Sequence record: NC_070956.1
Strand: one strand, 5' to 3'
Length of the DNA: 64,000 nucleotides
The notes below the pieces were generated by a model. That model was not told where the DNA came from, did not search any database, and saw nothing but the letters and a program-made list of their open reading frames with translations. Of this stretch, positions 18 to 45,300 are shown piece after piece. The position numbers and the translations under genes are program-made. The first letter of the stretch is position 1, and the number at the start of each line of letters is the position of its first letter.

Positions 18-419
18 GTGATTACTCGTCAAACCTTTAAGAACCTGGATGCGGAACTTCCATCGCTTTCAAGTTTCTTTCTCCCGAACATTCCGTGTGC
101 CGAAGTTAATGGATACCTGGTTATCCAAGCCAACGCCAGGAAGTTTCCAGAGAAGTTGCTCATGTTGGCCAGGAAGTATCCAGGGATCACGATTCAACAC
201 TGCAATGGCAAGCTATTGTTCGGTGGCTCGTTGGTGGGACCTGGACTCCCTGAGAGAACGGAGAAAAGGGACGGGACGTTTACGTTTCATATTTCCACCT
301 ATCCGGAACTTGCAACACCTAGATTCTGGGCAACACTTTCTATGCTTGCACAAGCTCAGCGTAAAACCTGGGTTAGCGAATTCACAAGTTATCTGAAACC
401 CGTACAAAACAACTATTAA
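18..419 (+). CDS. hypothetical protein (133 aa)
   Basis: ORF with GAGGA SD upstream; first of a tightly packed plus-strand series. Confidence 0.75.
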   Translation: MITRQTFKNLDAELPSLSSFFLPNIPCAEVNGYLVIQANARKFPEKLLMLARKYPGITIQHCNGKLLFGGSLVGPGLPERTEKRDGTFTFHISTYPELATPRFWATLSMLAQAQRKTWVSEFTSYLKPVQNNY

Positions 420-428
420 GGAAAGATC

Positions 429-1943
429 ATGCAAAACACCAAAATGATGAGTGAGAACAAAGACTGGATCGTTTACAGCAACTACTGGCGCACTACCTCG
501 CGCATCCTCGAACGCATGGGTGGTGAGTACACCAGTCAGGTTGAAATCAATCTGTCCGACGAGAACAACTCTGCCGAAGCTTTGGCGGAATTGCGTATTC
601 GTCAACATACCACCCCACCGTCCCTCCGTGATGTGATCAGTCACTATTACGAAACTTCCGTCCACGACAAACTGGTTGAGCTGATCGGGCCTGACAAAGC
701 CTGGATTGCTGAACACTGTAACATCCTCCCGTTCATTGATTGGCCGGAGTATAACCGGAAATGTAATGGCGGGGTCCCGTTGATCGAGTGTCTGAAAGAA
801 CTGGCACCACCGGTTCATGCGTACAGCGCGGTGAACGCGGTCAAGTTGAATACGTACCCGACTCGGGAACAGTTCTTCTACGACTTCGTTCTTGACGAGT
901 GGGATCGTGAGCTGGGGCACCTGGAGTTCATCTGCGGTTCCATCATTATGTATGCAGCCGCTTCCGCCAGGTTGTTCTTCATGTTCAATCCTTCCAGTGA
1001 AACATTCCATCTTTTCCTGAAGTGTCGTGACAGTGTTAACGGCAGTGCCCAGGTTATGATGAGTGCCGATTTGGAAGGTCTCAAGAAGTGGCATGAAAGT
1101 ACTCGTGGGATGGTTAGCTCGTTCTTCCAGGATGACTACGAAGGGATCTATCCTGATACCGCCATTCTTCAAAAGGGGATGACGGATGGGATCAACTACC
1201 TGATCTGGAAATACCTGATCAAAGATGTGATCACTGAGAAACCCAAGGAGATCGAACGTCGTTGGATGATCACTGATCGCAAGGTAGCTCTCCAGCGTCT
1301 TGTGGGGTCCGTGTGTAAGAGTGTTCAACAGTTCTACACGCCAGACGGTACCCGTTACCGCCAGACTATCAACGAAGACCAAATTACCACTTACGAGAAA
1401 ACCGTGAAGACTGGTAAGGGTCTGGTCAGGACCGAAGTGAACACCCCGATCACTCACAAAGCGTATCTGGATATGTATCACGCGCTTGACTGTCCTAAGC
1501 CGGTAAATAAACTTCGTTACGAATACCATCACAAAGGTTATTGTTTTGATGTCGATGTTTACACCGACAACAAGATGATCACCGCTGAGCTGGAGTTCAA
1601 AACGGTCAAGGAAGCGAAAGAGTTCCATAAGGTACCCGATTGGTTCGGTGAAGAGATCACTGATCTGGAAGGTGTCAGTAACTTCGACATCTTCAAAACG
1701 ATCAATGAAAAGCCGAAGGTAACTCTGGAACAACTCACGATGCACATGAATGGTCGTGAACTTCGTTTTGTTTACAAGAACCATCGTGGTGATGTAGCCA
1801 CTCGCCGAGTATCTCGTCCGTTCTCTATCAAGTTCGGGTCTAACGAGTATCACGAAGAAGAACAGTGGTTGTTGGAAGCGTGGGACCTGGACAAGAACCT
1901 CCCCCGCGTATTCGCCATGAAAGACATCATCGAGTTTAAATAA
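429..1943 (+). CDS. multidomain protein: unknown N-terminal domain + CYTH (triphosphate tunnel) domain + C-terminal WYL domain
   Basis: EIERRW (ExExK/R CYTH motif), KLRY, FDVDVY, AELEF, VPDWFGEEIT; C-terminal FVYKNHRGDVATRRV...QWLLEAWDLDKNLPRVFAMKDI matches the WYL pattern; TAAGGA SD. Confidence 0.8.
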   Translation: MQNTKMMSENKDWIVYSNYWRTTSRILERMGGEYTSQVEINLSDENNSAEALAELRIRQHTTPPSLRDVISHYYETSVHDKLVELIGPDKAWIAEHCNILPFIDWPEYNRKCNGGVPLIECLKELAPPVHAYSAVNAVKLNTYPTREQFFYDFVLDEWDRELGHLEFICGSIIMYAAASARLFFMFNPSSETFHLFLKCRDSVNGSAQVMMSADLEGLKKWHESTRGMVSSFFQDDYEGIYPDTAILQKGMTDGINYLIWKYLIKDVITEKPKEIERRWMITDRKVALQRLVGSVCKSVQQFYTPDGTRYRQTINEDQITTYEKTVKTGKGLVRTEVNTPITHKAYLDMYHALDCPKPVNKLRYEYHHKGYCFDVDVYTDNKMITAELEFKTVKEAKEFHKVPDWFGEEITDLEGVSNFDIFKTINEKPKVTLEQLTMHMNGRELRFVYKNHRGDVATRRVSRPFSIKFGSNEYHEEEQWLLEAWDLDKNLPRVFAMKDIIEFK

Positions 1944-5324: not shown

Positions 5325-6065
5325 ATGAAAAAGATTATTATCGCCACACTGTTCTTCGTCCCGTTCTTCGGTAATGCAGCTTCCTTTGACTGTCGCAAAG
5401 CGACCACTGTCATCGAGAAGACGATCTGCGAGGACGAAGTTGTCAGCAAGCTGGATGAAGAAGTCGCAAAAGTCTACAAGGCGGTTCGTCAGGCTAATCC
5501 TGGTGATCAAGACATCATCAACCAACAACGTGACTGGATCAAGTCCCGCAACAAAGCCACCAGTGTTGTGGAACTGGAAGAGAAACACAGGGACCGCCTG
5601 GACGTTCTCAACATCATGCTGAAAGCCTCCAACGAACCCCAGGCTATGAAGCGTGGCAACGCCGGTCCTGTGGCTATGAAGCGTGGCGATGCTCCTGTGA
5701 AAACTCAGGAACAGAAAACCAAGCCGGTTAAGAAAGGCACCATTGCCGAATTGGATGACATGGCCAAGCAGGTTAGTGAGACTGGCTATTACGTTGACCC
5801 TAAAGGTATGAAGTTCGATGGTCGCACTCTGGGTGCAGACATCAATGGTTTCCCTGGCTGGTGTGCTCAGCGTGTTAACCGCGTCACCGACACCCTGGTA
5901 CTGCAAATGGTGAAGACCGATGAAGAACGCGCGGCATTCGTCAAACACAGTTCCATGTTCCGCATCGTAATGGGCAACATGATGTTGGAGAACGCCAAGA
6001 TGACTACCGAGAAAATGGGTGTTCCTTTTGATCCCAACAATTTCTGTTTCAATCTGGACGTATAA
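5325..6065 (+). CDS. exported LprI/DUF1311-like (lysozyme inhibitor-like) protein
   Basis: signal peptide MKKIIIATLFFVPFFGNA; ASFDCRKATTVIEKTIC...LDEEV..VY...QQRDWIKSRN is the typical DUF1311 N-terminal pattern. Confidence 0.7.
   Translation: MKKIIIATLFFVPFFGNAASFDCRKATTVIEKTICEDEVVSKLDEEVAKVYKAVRQANPGDQDIINQQRDWIKSRNKATSVVELEEKHRDRLDVLNIMLKASNEPQAMKRGNAGPVAMKRGDAPVKTQEQKTKPVKKGTIAELDDMAKQVSETGYYVDPKGMKFDGRTLGADINGFPGWCAQRVNRVTDTLVLQMVKTDEERAAFVKHSSMFRIVMGNMMLENAKMTTEKMGVPFDPNNFCFNLDV
5642..5687 (+). repeat. 16-bp direct repeat with 30-bp period (AMKRG x2)
   Basis: GGCTATGAAGCGTGGC at 5642-5657 and 5672-5687. Confidence 0.9.
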
Positions 6066-6074
6066 GGAAAGATC

Positions 6075-6464
6075 ATGAAAAAGATTATTCTTGCGTTGTT
6101 CTTTACTTCTTTCTTTGCTGTGGCTGATACCGGTGTCAGTAAGGAAGAGGTTGAAGAACTGATCGAAGTTGCTTCCGGACACGTAACCGAAATCGATATC
6201 AACGGTTTCGCCGTCTCCGGGACTTCTATCAATACCACATCCAACAAAGAGTTGCGTAACTGTGCCCAAGCTTTGGGTTCACAGTTGGTCGCTGACGTCT
6301 ATCTCAAGCCAGCCCACGAGTATGGACTTTACGCGGAACTGACCAACGTCCGTGATGGAGCCAACACCGTTGGTGCAAATATGGTGATTAATCAGCTCCT
6401 GGGGATCTCTGGGTCTGATGAAGTCGCTCTCACTATCTGCAACAAACTTCGGAGCAACATGTAA
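6075..6464 (+). CDS. small exported protein (129 aa)
   Basis: signal peptide MKKIILALFFTSFFAVA; TAAGGA SD; two Cys. Confidence 0.8.
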   Translation: MKKIILALFFTSFFAVADTGVSKEEVEELIEVASGHVTEIDINGFAVSGTSINTTSNKELRNCAQALGSQLVADVYLKPAHEYGLYAELTNVRDGANTVGANMVINQLLGISGSDEVALTICNKLRSNM

Positions 6465-15414: not shown

Positions 15415-16560
15415 ATGCATTTCTCTAAACCTCGTTTGGTAGTTGGTTTCGATATGGATGACACCATGTGTCAAACTGGCGAATACATCAAGCAAGCCAT
15501 CCGGCACTTCGCCCTCAAAACCAACAACAAAGACTTGTTGGACTACCTGGATCGGACAGTAGAACTTTCCACTATGCACTACGAACCCTGGGTCAAAGAT
15601 CTGGTTTGGTCTGAAGTAGTCAGCAATGGTCGCTTCATGCTCGATGCGTTACCCACTGACATCTGTAATGATGGTGGATTGGTAGATCGTGTCTCTCTTT
15701 TCCGTGACGAAGAATGCAAACACGGTGAAGTCGCACTTGTAATCTGTACTCACCGCGGGTTCCATGAACAAGGTAAACTGTTCACCGAGACCTGGCTCAA
15801 GGACAGAGGACTGGATTGGGTCTTTGATGAGATCCATTGTGTTTCCTCTAAGGAGCACAAAGATAAGATCAAGTATCTGAAAGAGCAATATCCTGGTTCC
15901 CACATCCTGCTGATCGATGACAACCCGATGGGCGACTCCGCACCTCACACCCCTGCCATGGACGAACTTATCATCTACGATAAGTACACCAAGTTCCAGG
16001 CATATAAAGATCAGGTTGTCTACCAATCTGATAATCAAGTCATCGAGATCATGCGTGATCGCTTGAAAAAGCAAACCCCGCTGACTATAGAAATGTATGA
16101 CAGTGGTAAAAAGATCGAAGCCAAGCATTACCTGAACGTCGGGCAGATGGTTCGACAACTCCTGGTTGTCGAACACCAGTACGCCAAGTCTCTTTATGAG
16201 ACATCTGGTTTGATCGATCCTAGCACACCCATCAACGAACTCGTTGAATACATCTCTGGATACGATAGCGACGCTGTCAAATCGTTCATCCTGTTCGCTG
16301 ATGGCGAAGCCGTTGGGTTTACCCGGGCTTTCAATGATGGTGATCCGGCGCACTGGAACCTCTGTGCGTTCGTTATCGACGAAGCGGTTCGAGGGAAAGG
16401 TTTCGGTAAACAGTTCGTTCGTCTGGTAGAAAACAAACTCAAGGCCAATGGTGCCGAAGAGATTGTCCTGGATCACAAATACGATAACGACCAAAGTTCC
16501 GCCTTCTGGCAAAAACTTGGTTATGTTCCACACACAGTTGTTTGTTCGAGGAAACTGTAA
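15415..16560 (+). CDS. HAD-superfamily phosphatase (NT5C-like) fused to a C-terminal GNAT acetyltransferase
   Basis: GFDMDDT (HAD motif I), ICTHRG (motif II), K..KI, LIDDNP (motif IV); C-terminal FVIDEAVRGKGFGKQ (acetyl-CoA motif A), N...AFWQKLGY. Confidence 0.85.
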   Translation: MHFSKPRLVVGFDMDDTMCQTGEYIKQAIRHFALKTNNKDLLDYLDRTVELSTMHYEPWVKDLVWSEVVSNGRFMLDALPTDICNDGGLVDRVSLFRDEECKHGEVALVICTHRGFHEQGKLFTETWLKDRGLDWVFDEIHCVSSKEHKDKIKYLKEQYPGSHILLIDDNPMGDSAPHTPAMDELIIYDKYTKFQAYKDQVVYQSDNQVIEIMRDRLKKQTPLTIEMYDSGKKIEAKHYLNVGQMVRQLLVVEHQYAKSLYETSGLIDPSTPINELVEYISGYDSDAVKSFILFADGEAVGFTRAFNDGDPAHWNLCAFVIDEAVRGKGFGKQFVRLVENKLKANGAEEIVLDHKYDNDQSSAFWQKLGYVPHTVVCSRKL

Positions 16561-42347: not shown

Positions 42348-45300
42348 TTAACCTAATCCAACGGTGTTCGGTCGACCACCTTTACCTTGGCTGGCCATCA
42401 GGTCATTCAACCTACCAAGCTGACTGATGATCCCACTCAACAATTGCTGAGCTCCTTCATCACTGACTGCTTGTGTTCCCGTGCCAGTCTGTTTGGGAGC
42501 TGGTTTGGGGGTTGGACCAACACTAGAAACAGTAGTAGGACCTGCCGGTTGACTTACTGGTGCCGGAGCACTCGGTTTGGGACCCGGAGCCTGAACTGGT
42601 GTCGGACTCGGAACTGGGTTAGTAACAGCGGCGGTTGGTGCTGCACTAGGAGATACCGGCGGAGACGCTGTCGCAGCTTTCTGTTGATTAACGCTACTCT
42701 TATCCAAGAGCTCATCGACTTCCTGCTTATGAGTCTTCTTGGTAGATGCGACTTTCTCTTCAGCGGCCTTGGGGACATTCTGATCGGCAGCGTTAGGAAC
42801 ATCCGCTATCTTATCTTCACCGCCAGAGGTCGGTGCAAAGTCGGAGGTCTTTGTCGGACCCGCTGCTTTGATTTGACCGTTCTGGAGTTTAGCAAGATAT
42901 TCGGTATATGCCTTACGACGTTCGTCAGTAAAGGGAACAGAGTTACCGCCGTTGATACCACGAACAGCACTATCGAAGTCACCAGTCGTCGCAATGGACT
43001 TGATCGCTTTATTACCCAGGAGGTAACGAACAGCGGAGTCTGCTACAACGTTAGGATCTTCAGATACCAGTCGTGGGTTACTTACGACGTCTATCCCTGT
43101 CTCACGCTTGTACTTTTCGTAGTTGGCTTTACCAGTGAGCTGGAACAAACCACGACCACGATACAACCAACCATCCTCAGGCTTCTCGTTACCGAGTGTG
43201 GGACCTTTGGGCGCTCTACCATACACATACATCGCACGTTGTTCTGGTGGCATTGCTGCTACCTTTTCCGCTGTAGCCATGTCTGGTATGTTCCTGAAAT
43301 ACTTCTTCAGGGTTGGTGCAGACCAGTTGGTGTTTTCTACCGTGGACTTGTAGTTGCCCGTTTCAACCTTGGCAAGTGCCAGAGCGAGAGCAATCTGCTT
43401 GTTGTCTGTGATACCAGCACGGAGCAGACCTTGAAGGAGGAGTTGTTCACCCTGTTCCGGAGTCATGGAGAGACCTTGGTCATCACCTGCCTTCAGAGTG
43501 GGATCCATTTCCCAACCTTCACTGAACCCACCACTATACTGACCACCGCTACCAGCACCTACTGTCCCTGGGGTAGTTCCCATTCCACCAGGAGGGAAAG
43601 CATTAGCAAAACCATTGCTTGCGTAGTTGTTTCCACCGAAAGTCCCACCTTGCTTACCGGCTTGCTCCCTGCGTTTCATACGCATGGCAGTCAGTTCTGC
43701 AATACGGGCCTGTTCAGCTTGTTTCCTGGCTTCGGACTTATCTTGGAGTTGTTCACCGATTGCTTTAGAAGCAGCCTCCTCCATTACCGGGTCGCGCAAC
43801 GCTGCTTTCATTGCATCGCTGTTAAGCGACTTAATGTAAGTATCAGCCCTATCGCTGTCGGTACCGGATTGAGCACCTTCGAACGGACTCGCTTTCACGT
43901 TCCAGACAGAAGTCTCTTCACCATCGACCATTACCATGATCTCTGACAGCACTTTAGCTATTTCGGCTTTGTTGCTATTAGAGAGCTGACGCCAACCTTG
44001 TTTCGGAGATGACCCACGTTGTTTGTAAACCAGTGCGTAGTACTTCTGGAGTACAGGGAGGAAACGTGATTCGAACCAAGCCTTCCAGTTCGCCATCATC
44101 AGTTCTGTTTTGATCCTGAACATCGGCTTGAAGAGAGCCAGTACAGACTCCAGTGGGATTTCGAGTTTCCCCAGCCCATTGGAAAGAACCATGTTCTCTT
44201 CGCAATAACGTTCAAGTTTCAGAACCGCATCTACACGCCAGTTGATATTGGCATCGTTACCGTACACGGCAAGACGAGCAAGCGTGAATGGTTCGATTTC
44301 CGTGTCTCCATCTTTGTGGAGGTCAGATATGTCGATGTCCTTAATTTCCGCTGTGACAGCGAAGGTTTTGTCGATGTGCTCTTGTGATTTGATTAACGAC
44401 TCGTTACCGAACTTATTCTGGAACCAAGCGACAACCTTATTGTCCGATACTTCCGGATTCAGGTTGGCTTGACGTTGCTCATCATAAGTCCTCAGCTTGA
44501 GACCGTCCGCCTTCTTCTCGGCTGGATAAGCTTTACGAAGTTCATTCATCAAATCAGCGACTTCGCCAGTAGTAGCAATTCTTGACATCGTCCCAGTATC
44601 TTGGTCAATCGGGACGTCGATAGTGTAAGGATTGGTCGACATGTGGCCAATGGCTTCCTGTACACGCTCTGCGACAAGAACTACTTCGTGGGTCTGACCA
44701 GCATCGTACTCTTGAAGATCGCCAAACCTTGCAGCGTTAGCCGCGGCAACGAAAGTCAAGAAGATGGGCTTGAACCGTGCCTGGAACCAAGTATTGATAT
44801 TGTCACGAGGAACCGGAGTTGAGTTCTCAACGAACTGTCTGAAGACTTCAGCAACTGCCTCTGGTTTACTGAAACCTGCTGATCCACTACCCACATTAAC
44901 ATGTGGGAGCAACATCATCTCGAGACGTTGTACACGCTCTGCCAAATCACTCCGCCATTCACGAATACCGTACATCGCGAAACGAAGACGTTTCTGAATG
45001 GAGTTGGCCAGCAGAGTTGTCCGGTAAGTAGTGCCGTTGTACTTGTACCCTTCCGAGTTAGCCATATGCTGTTCGGCGTCACGACGGTCTGTGAACAACT
45101 GTCCATCATCGGTCCAGTACACACCAGTGTTCTTGATACCGTCAATCCAGCTCTTGGGCATAACCGCTTCAAGAACCGTGGTCCCGATACCAATCTGAGG
45201 AATCCAGTTTGCAGCATCCTCTATCTGATCAGCAGTGGTCACTGGACGTTTCTGGTTGAACATGTTCTCTTCAGTAGGTGTGGAAGAACTGTCGTCACCT

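Follow-up and report, generated by a model that had tools for sequence, protein, structure and literature searches.

A rare fusion of an orphan jumbo-phage domain, a putative triphosphatase-type CYTH domain, and a divergent WYL module in Aeromonas phage LAh10

The stretch of DNA considered here (the window, 64,000 nucleotides (nt) in full) corresponds to positions 124001–188000 of Aeromonas phage LAh10 (MK838116), a 260-kb phiKZ-like jumbo phage of the genus Ludhianavirus, whose gene content includes split multisubunit RNA-polymerase beta subunits, GroEL, a UvsX-like recombinase, and further phiKZ-like features. The gene at 429..1943 encodes a protein of 504 amino acids (aa) built of an N-terminal domain (N), a CYTH domain (C), and a WYL module (W). 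This N-C-W protein unites known kinds of domains with one orphan fold and is rare, constrained, and uncharacterised. On balance it is regarded as a metal-dependent triphosphate hydrolase, probably targeted or regulated by the flanking WYL and N modules and acting on nucleotide/phosphate pools or 5'-triphosphate ends. What stands firmly is the corrected annotation (a domain of triphosphatase type rather than a cyclase, three modules, and a rare fusion), the remainder being hypothesis-generating. The features of the gene are as follows.

429..1943, plus strand: coding sequence of the N-CYTH-WYL protein, 504 aa, named "hypothetical protein" in LAh10 and "putative CYTH-like phosphatase" in phages D3 and D6.
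418..425, plus strand: ribosome-binding site AAGGAAAG, between the stop codon of the upstream gene (417–419) and the ATG at 429.
444..803, plus strand: N-core, aa 6–125, the conserved part of the orphan jumbo-phage family phrog_30474.
804..1163, plus strand: N-variable half, aa 126–245, a four-strand beta-meander plus helices.
1245..1712, plus strand: CYTH (triphosphate tunnel metalloenzyme, TTM) domain, aa 273–428, phrog_6660, with the ExExK-type motif starting from E274 (nt 1248).
1713..1748, plus strand: flexible CYTH-WYL linker, with the predicted local distance difference test (pLDDT) score of the model below 50 at model residues 150–174, that is about aa 414–438.
1749..1931, plus strand: divergent WYL module (predicted Sm-like beta-barrel), aa 441–501, a segment of phrog_3715.

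A gene of three segments had been proposed in the first-pass annotation of this DNA, and all of them were recovered at almost exactly the same coordinates by open reading frame (ORF) analysis, PHROGs, profiles, and structural models. PHROGs divides the protein into three unrelated families, which are phrog_30474 (aa 6–117), phrog_6660 (aa 273–428, 3.5e-34), and a part of phrog_3715 (aa 429–503). The N-terminal part of about 270 aa, left at first without assignment, proved to be a real module (aa ~6–245, nt 444–1163) that represents an orphan family found in jumbo phages only. The CYTH domain, expected from about position 1245, was located there by phmmer, family profile, and Foldseek, and the WYL domain, expected from about 1746, was placed at nt 1749–1931 by the Pfam score of the isolated segment and by its family members. 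The observation of the first-pass annotation is confirmed in this way and its interpretation is partly supported. Per-domain alignments were used; when the query and all 150 homologs were aligned globally by MAFFT, CYTH-only sequences were stacked on the WYL region, and that alignment was discarded.

The CYTH identity of the central domain was established by comparison with solved structures. Single-sequence phmmer against the PDB detected Nitrosomonas NE1496 (NeuTTM; 2FBL/3TYP) at 8e-5, and the 51-sequence CYTH family profile was aligned to NeuTTM 2FBL over the full length at 1.6e-40. In the AlphaFold2 model the barrel (pLDDT 80–97) possesses the strand pattern of the eight-stranded antiparallel β-barrel tunnel fold. 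The Foldseek search with the CYTH+WYL model gave 2FBL/3TYP as the best match (1e-6), then SaTTM, Pyrococcus, AtTTM3, and Bacillus CYTH structures (27 matches with E ≤ 1e-3), and at lower ranks class IV cyclases, thiamine triphosphatases, Cet1, and the vaccinia capping-enzyme tunnel.

The key residues of the domain are E274, E276, R278 (Lys in relatives), Y303, R309, R311, K327, R334, E336, K361, R363, D376, E387, and E389. All eleven family-invariant positions (E274, E276, Q301, R309, K327, R334, E336, K361, R363, E387, and E389) are kept in the query, and the same eleven are invariant across four multidomain relatives. The ExExK motif reads E274-I-E276-R-R278, with both Glu invariant in the family. 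Class IV adenylate cyclases (AC-IV) are characterized by an HF motif four residues ahead of ExExK and by a small residue where other enzymes have the central Arg in the xRxR strand (Vogt et al. 2021, PMC8233210), thiamine triphosphatases possess a WxRxR motif, in which Trp at the strand start stacks the thiazolium ring (PMC8233210), and the second ExE glutamate is required for the second metal in CYTH enzymes (PMC8233210). In the query E274 is preceded by V-I-T-E-K-P-K with no HF, residues 308–311 are T-R-Y-R with both Arg kept and T308 in the place of the thiamine-triphosphatase Trp, and the second acidic pair is present as E387-L-E389; taken together these three features point to the triphosphatase type.

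The proposed catalytic dyad of NeuTTM, Tyr28/Lys52 (PMC3440374), corresponds to Y303/K327, which is kept, and the NeuTTM/CthTTM-type determinants, namely, this dyad, RxR (R309/R311), KxR (K361/R363), and ExE (E387/E389), are all present and invariant in the family. NeuTTM and CthTTM are tripolyphosphatases without significant cyclase activity (PMC3440374). Judging from these residues, the CYTH domain of the LAh10 protein fits a NeuTTM/CthTTM-type triphosphatase and neither a class IV cyclase nor a thiamine triphosphatase. The option of cyclic AMP (cAMP) production, which had been raised in the first-pass annotation, was accordingly judged unlikely, given the missing HF motif, the retained central Arg, the Tyr/Lys dyad, and both ExE glutamates. 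NeuTTM (NE1496; 2FBL, 3TYP) and CthTTM, cluster-2 bacterial enzymes, have ExEx[K/R], the Tyr/Lys dyad, RxR, K-x-R, and ExE in common with the query, as well as the C-terminal "P-x-W-F-G-x-E-V/I-T" strand, and the chemistry expected from this likeness would be the same, that is metal-dependent triphosphate hydrolysis. They are, however, single-domain proteins of ~150 aa, whereas the LAh10 domain is flanked by an orphan domain of 270 aa on one side and a WYL module on the other and has Arg in place of the motif Lys. In addition, a 422-aa protein (P0131) from the search of 1.84 billion proteins described below combines the phage-type CYTH with an S-adenosylmethionine (SAM)-dependent methyltransferase (Methyltransf_11/12/25), resembling RNA 5'-end modifiers.

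The refuting condition attached to the C-terminal prediction, that a profile search would not return WYL, was put to the test, and the assignment stands. Pfam WYL (PF13280) scored 20.0 bits, under the gathering cutoff of 21.8, when the whole protein was scanned, and 25.6 bits against the same cutoff (E 1.3e-5) when the C-terminal 74-aa segment was scanned alone; PF13280 was also matched by 39 of the 42 members of the WYL family, with a best value of 2e-11. PADLOC gave a weak generic WYL match and nothing else. In the model the module consists of five strands (pLDDT 93–95) and is joined to CYTH by a disordered linker, and the 50 matches listed in Foldseek of the CYTH+WYL model were made up of CYTH structures. 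A profile search of the PDB with the WYL module reached the WYL regions of CapW (9C5G, E 0.19) and BrxR (7QFZ, E 1.4), neither of them significant.

The query family has the classical WYL layout, F-x-Y-x-N...R-R-V-x-P...Q-W-L-L-x-A-x-D...R-x-F-A-x-x-D-I, and the WYL strand of the query is W480-L-L, reading Q-W-L-L-E-A-W-D...R-V-F-A-M-K-D-I. The family invariants are Y449, N451, R459, Q479, D486, R493, and A496; a family-specific insertion, G-S-x-E-Y-H-x-E-x-Q, carries invariant H475 and Q479, and the invariant polar constellation of the phage family comprises Y449, N451, R459, H475, Q479, D486, K489, and R493. With CapW, BrxR, PafBC, and DriD (wHTH-WYL-WCX proteins) the query shares the Pfam WYL match, the W-[YL]-L strand with A-x-D behind it, and the R-x-F-x-x-x-D-I motif. 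In those proteins the WYL domain stands beside a DNA-binding domain, whereas in LAh10 it is attached to an enzyme. No helix-turn-helix (HTH) was found in Pfam, NCBIfam, or PADLOC scans, and there is no WCX, the protein ending 3 residues past the WYL module; therefore the LAh10 protein is not a regulator of the PafBC/CapW type.

The same WYL module occurs in about 396 phage records as free proteins of 70–100 aa, as tandems, and as fusions to unrelated partners. These modules (phrog_3715 segment) show 40–55% identity to aa 441–501 and share all the invariant residues, but they are single modules, W-W tandems, or unrelated fusions, unlike the LAh10 enzyme fusion. The standalone carriers include rV5-like, N4-like, Caulobacter, Rhizobium, Vibrio, and other lytic phages; one example is the 73-aa VVA60376 of Escherichia phage rV5_ev168 (L002:2459–2680), whose rV5-like copies lie next to EndoVII. 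The records of Campylobacter phages C9, C11, and A141 (MG0656xx) have the same 52.5%-identity match as rV5-like Escherichia phages and similar genome sizes, and their host labels look doubtful. W-W tandems are represented by P0014 and P0029, and in P0079 and P0081 the WYL module follows ~400 aa of other sequence. The latter two proteins (about 500 aa, with C-terminal WYL) were considered as diverged N-C-W and rejected, as hhalign revealed the linker and WYL alone as shared parts. The parts ahead of WYL in pAEv1810 gp195, a 238-aa protein of contig L005, P0013, and others were likewise rejected as cryptic CYTH or N.

The N domain was modelled by AlphaFold with pLDDT 86 and a predicted template modelling (TM) score (pTM) of 0.83, and its N-core reached pLDDT of about 90. 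The conserved polar set of the N-core (D12, R25, R29, E39, R58, H60, T62, H72, H96, and D104) looks like a binding or active site. The N-variable half (aa 126–245) is poorly conserved and missing from many homologs. Foldseek of the N model against the PDB gave nothing significant (best E 0.05, TM ≤ 0.19); the weak local likeness of its second half to PUR repeats and the PARP WGR, both modules that bind nucleic acids (probability 0.75–0.91, E ≥ 0.08, TM ≤ 0.19) is not significant either. The BFVD matches were jumbo-phage proteins alone (for example, of pEt-SU, RisingSun, and EL), all uncharacterised, no recurring Pfam family was found among 19 N-family members, and no PDB sequence was matched. 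The tblastn search of N returned 57 phage records, all of 190–285 kb. A 2H phosphoesterase identity, prompted by R-x-H60-x-T62, was rejected, since the bilobed 2H fold carries two H-x-T/S-x motifs and N has just one HxT-like motif, with no 2H protein among the Foldseek PDB matches, and no Pfam signal in the 19 members.

The phrog_30474 proteins (pAEv1810 gp194, EL ORF143, OBP_222/223, RisingSun, and pEt-SU) are homologous to aa 6–125 and the longer ones to aa 6–245; they are uncharacterised standalone proteins of 130–280 aa and occupy the same position in the nrdB-to-thyA block as the LAh10 fusion. In Pseudomonas phage OBP the products of OBP_222 and OBP_223 (L010:4571–5816) are adjacent N-family paralogs (E 4e-11 and 1e-56 against the N profile). 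The 134-aa UOX39536 of Aeromonas phage ZPAH34 (L006:5013–5417), named "putative CytH-like phosphatase", is the N-core alone with no CYTH, and its name was evidently transferred from the multidomain protein of D3/D6.

The combination of CYTH with WYL had not been recognised as a described one, and the architecture search agrees with this in revealing a rare fusion; no paper addressing the LAh10 protein or a CYTH-WYL fusion was found in the literature. When phmmer was run exhaustively against 1.84 billion representative proteins, it gave 3097 matches, the best 150 of which were sorted with per-domain HMMs (hidden Markov models) into N-C-W (3), N-C (2), N alone (18), CYTH alone (61), W alone (65), and W-W tandem (2). 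The full N-C-W architecture was seen in two places, the first being LAh10/D3/D6/D9 (99% identity) and the second P0002 (506 aa, 36% identity), whose gene lies on metagenome contig L004 in synteny with the window. A word-indexed search of a 5.8-billion protein set returned the own phage cluster only and nothing for the CYTH+WYL segment, a weak negative because shared 5-mers are needed, and the IMG/VR scan gave a single weak locus with CYTH alone.

In relatives the same modules are found as split genes. Contig L005 carries an N-CYTH protein, then a 199-aa gene, and then the 238-aa protein with the same WYL module at its end; in pAEv1810 gp195, with the WYL module at its end, comes right after the N homolog gp194; and in AerS_266 the N-core and CYTH are 5 kb apart within one block. 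Because the modules are fused in some phages and are neighbouring split genes in relatives, this Rosetta-stone evidence suggests that N, CYTH, and WYL work together.

The gene is packed in an operon-like manner, with the AAGGA core of its ribosome-binding site 6 nt ahead of the ATG and immediately past the stop of the preceding gene, a downstream gene that begins 10 nt past its stop codon with an AGGAG of its own, and no terminator separating these genes. Between LAh10 and D6 there are 53 nt differences in this gene, 49 synonymous and 4 nonsynonymous, which corresponds to a ratio of nonsynonymous to synonymous rates (dN/dS) of 0.019, and the CYTH segment has 0 amino-acid changes. With 53 nt but just 4 residue differences, the plus frame is coding and the protein strongly constrained, that is, the 504-aa gene is under strong purifying selection. 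An antisense ORF of 546 aa (213..1853, minus strand) overlaps most of 429..1943 and is regarded as a shadow ORF owing to the 49:4 pattern in the plus frame.

The jumbo-phage gene for N or N-C-W belongs to a block of small genes, all on one strand, that has nrdB on one side and a Ser/Thr phosphatase and thymidylate synthase on the other, and across relatives the neighbourhoods contain nrdB, thyA, tk, and thioredoxin. In the nrdA-regB-tk region of the T4-like phage Aes012 a standalone CYTH gene directly precedes thymidine kinase (L014:3995–5035); it is annotated as "similar to bacterial adenylate cyclase", a label that is probably incorrect in this family. In Iyer et al. 2021 study (PMC7824862) CYTH triphosphatases were described as scattered in jumbo phages and proposed to degrade NTPs (nucleoside triphosphates) with unmodified bases.

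For the favoured hydrolase we infer the following scheme of substrate class, module roles (WYL and N), and physiological purpose. The NeuTTM/CthTTM-type tunnel, most likely with two divalent metal ions, would hydrolyse a triphosphate group and would not cyclise ATP; inorganic tripolyphosphate (PPPi), NTP or dNTP, and a 5'-triphosphate end are the candidate substrates. The tethered WYL module together with the N domain may bind a ligand or single-stranded nucleic acid, and this binding would either deliver the substrate to the tunnel or switch the activity on and off. The modules were presumably fused in the Ludhianavirus lineage, and in related jumbo phages they persist as separate neighbouring genes. 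Since the gene sits in the nrdB-to-thyA block, nucleotide or phosphate pool management during infection is the most likely role.

Several observations weigh against this scheme. The Pfam CYTH model (PF01928) did not match the query even at E ≤ 10, and the relative P0004 was matched only at 0.061, so the CYTH membership rests on the profile-to-PDB match at 1.6e-40. The motif Lys is changed to Arg (R278) in the LAh10 group alone, being Lys in P0002, P0004, P0006, and standalone phage homologs. Neither CYTH nor WYL was found within 5 kb of N in EL, OBP, N1M2, CF8, and ZPAH34, and the standalone CYTH genes of AerS_266 and Aes012 have no WYL neighbour; as most jumbo phages keep N alone and standalone CYTH lacks such a neighbour, the link between the three modules is lineage-restricted. 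The nucleotide-metabolism context is a broad block with many small genes without assigned function, and the immediate neighbours of 429..1943 in the window are all orphans that give no functional hint. Finally, in CapW the Arg residues flanking the WYL strand (RWHVR) contact single-stranded DNA (ssDNA) (PMC11662680), and at these positions, as aligned by eye on the motif, the phage family has invariant Q479 and variable E483. Because the CapW arginines are replaced and the family has its own insertion, the ligand of the phage WYL may be different from ssDNA.

A special case of the same hydrolase scheme, rather unlikely in itself but to be taken seriously, is 5'-end processing of RNA or DNA, where WYL and possibly the PUR/WGR-like half of N would hold a single-stranded nucleic acid, such as a transcript of the phage RNA polymerase (RNAP) or a primer, and the tunnel would remove its gamma or beta+gamma phosphates. 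WYL domains with known ligands bind ssDNA, and WYL1 binds single-stranded RNA; the phage family, however, is devoid of the ssDNA-contact arginines, and the likeness of the second half of N to PUR and WGR modules, which would suit such a role, is below significance. The TTM superfamily includes Cet1 and viral capping RNA triphosphatases, and the tunnels of vaccinia D1 and T. cruzi Cet1 were matched by the model at 4e-4 to 5e-3. Cet1 and poxvirus D1 share the tunnel fold, and they are viral enzymes joined to other modules that hold the nucleic-acid substrate, but they are much more distant from the query than NeuTTM, and the LAh10 protein has neither a guanylyltransferase nor a methyltransferase. 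The closest characterised relatives, NeuTTM and CthTTM, act on PPPi and NTPs. The CYTH-methyltransferase arrangement of P0131 is typical of capping or end-modifying enzymes, and LAh10 encodes its own multisubunit RNAP; nevertheless a standalone CYTH of the same family is also present in T4-like phages, which use the host RNAP.

Counter-defence is a more doubtful explanation. According to it the WYL ligand (ssDNA, RNA, or an immune nucleotide) would activate the triphosphatase, which would then degrade a triphosphate-bearing signal of the immune system or a precursor of it (linear 5'-ppp oligonucleotides or (p)ppNpp-type alarmones, for instance) and so blunt nucleotide-signalling defence. WYL domains serve as ligand sensors on many defence systems; here, however, PADLOC indicated the generic WYL match alone, and no link to CBASS, Pycsar, Thoeris, or other defence or anti-defence genes was found in the loci examined, where the neighbourhood is that of nucleotide metabolism. 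In the model the WYL module appears flexibly tethered beside an intact enzyme, its own invariant polar constellation suggests a specific ligand, and many lytic phages carry the same module as a standalone protein. Against this, phage CYTH proteins are not known to act on signalling nucleotides, and support in the literature was not found. A broader version, equally improbable, would have WYL sense a small nucleotide or single-stranded nucleic-acid cue other than the ssDNA of host WYL repressors, upon which the triphosphatase would destroy a triphosphate-bearing immune signal or alarmone; the free 70–100-aa WYL proteins of ~400 phages would then form a sponge- or decoy-like family of ligand binders, and N, as a new fold, might provide a second activity or a targeting function specific for phiKZ-like jumbo phages.

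It is still harder to accept that the protein is a catalytically silent binder, whose tunnel has been turned by K278R and the added modules into a triphosphate/nucleotide sponge or scaffold. The substitution is confined to the LAh10 group, and Arabidopsis TTM1 and TTM2 illustrate the departure of CYTH proteins from canonical chemistry, but Lys to Arg retains the charge, the full-length P0002 has the canonical Lys at 36% identity, and both metal-binding Glu pairs, the Tyr/Lys dyad, and all tunnel Arg/Lys are kept and invariant under a dN/dS of 0.02. The least probable explanation is that the protein adjusts host cAMP as a class IV adenylate (nucleotidyl) cyclase, like the host's CyaB, since, despite the origin of the CYTH name from A. 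hydrophila CyaB, the model matches to class IV structures (3N0Z/3N10/2FJT, 6e-4 to 3e-3), and the adenylate cyclase labels in some phage records, T-E-K-P-K stands in place of the HF motif, R309 is kept, NeuTTM and CthTTM do not cyclise, and the family profile that finds NeuTTM at 1.6e-40 finds no AC-IV chain at E ≤ 0.01.

Nearly all known WYL domains are sensors on transcription factors, the exceptions being a helicase and a Cas13 accessory protein. If the favoured hydrolase reading is true, a WYL module tethered to a viral metabolic or phosphohydrolase enzyme would widen the range of what WYL sensors control, and the fusion would be a tractable system in which to find a WYL ligand other than ssDNA. 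CYTH enzymes are frequent in T4-like and jumbo phages, where they make up an entire PHROG, and the fusion offers clues to their substrates. The N domain represents a confidently modelled, conserved jumbo-phage-specific fold without a solved relative, and together with the standalone phage WYL family it is a worthwhile side lead.

Several other genes of the window were characterised in passing. On the plus strand, the product of 5325–6065 is hydrophobic at its N-terminus and contains a lysozyme-inhibitor-like domain, LprI/DUF1311 (Pfam 2.5e-5, phrog_4675); a homolog of this protein occupies the equivalent position in L004, a distant relative, and 6075–6464 encodes a weak partial paralog of the 5325–6065 product. 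The plus-strand gene 15415–16560 (381 aa) joins a C-terminal acetyltransferase-like domain to a phrog_16292 region whose polynucleotide-kinase-like signal is weak. On the minus strand, the 2353-aa ORF at 42348–49409 matches a tail-fibre PHROG over its first about 1200 aa and endolysin and chitinase-like families at aa about 2000–2220.

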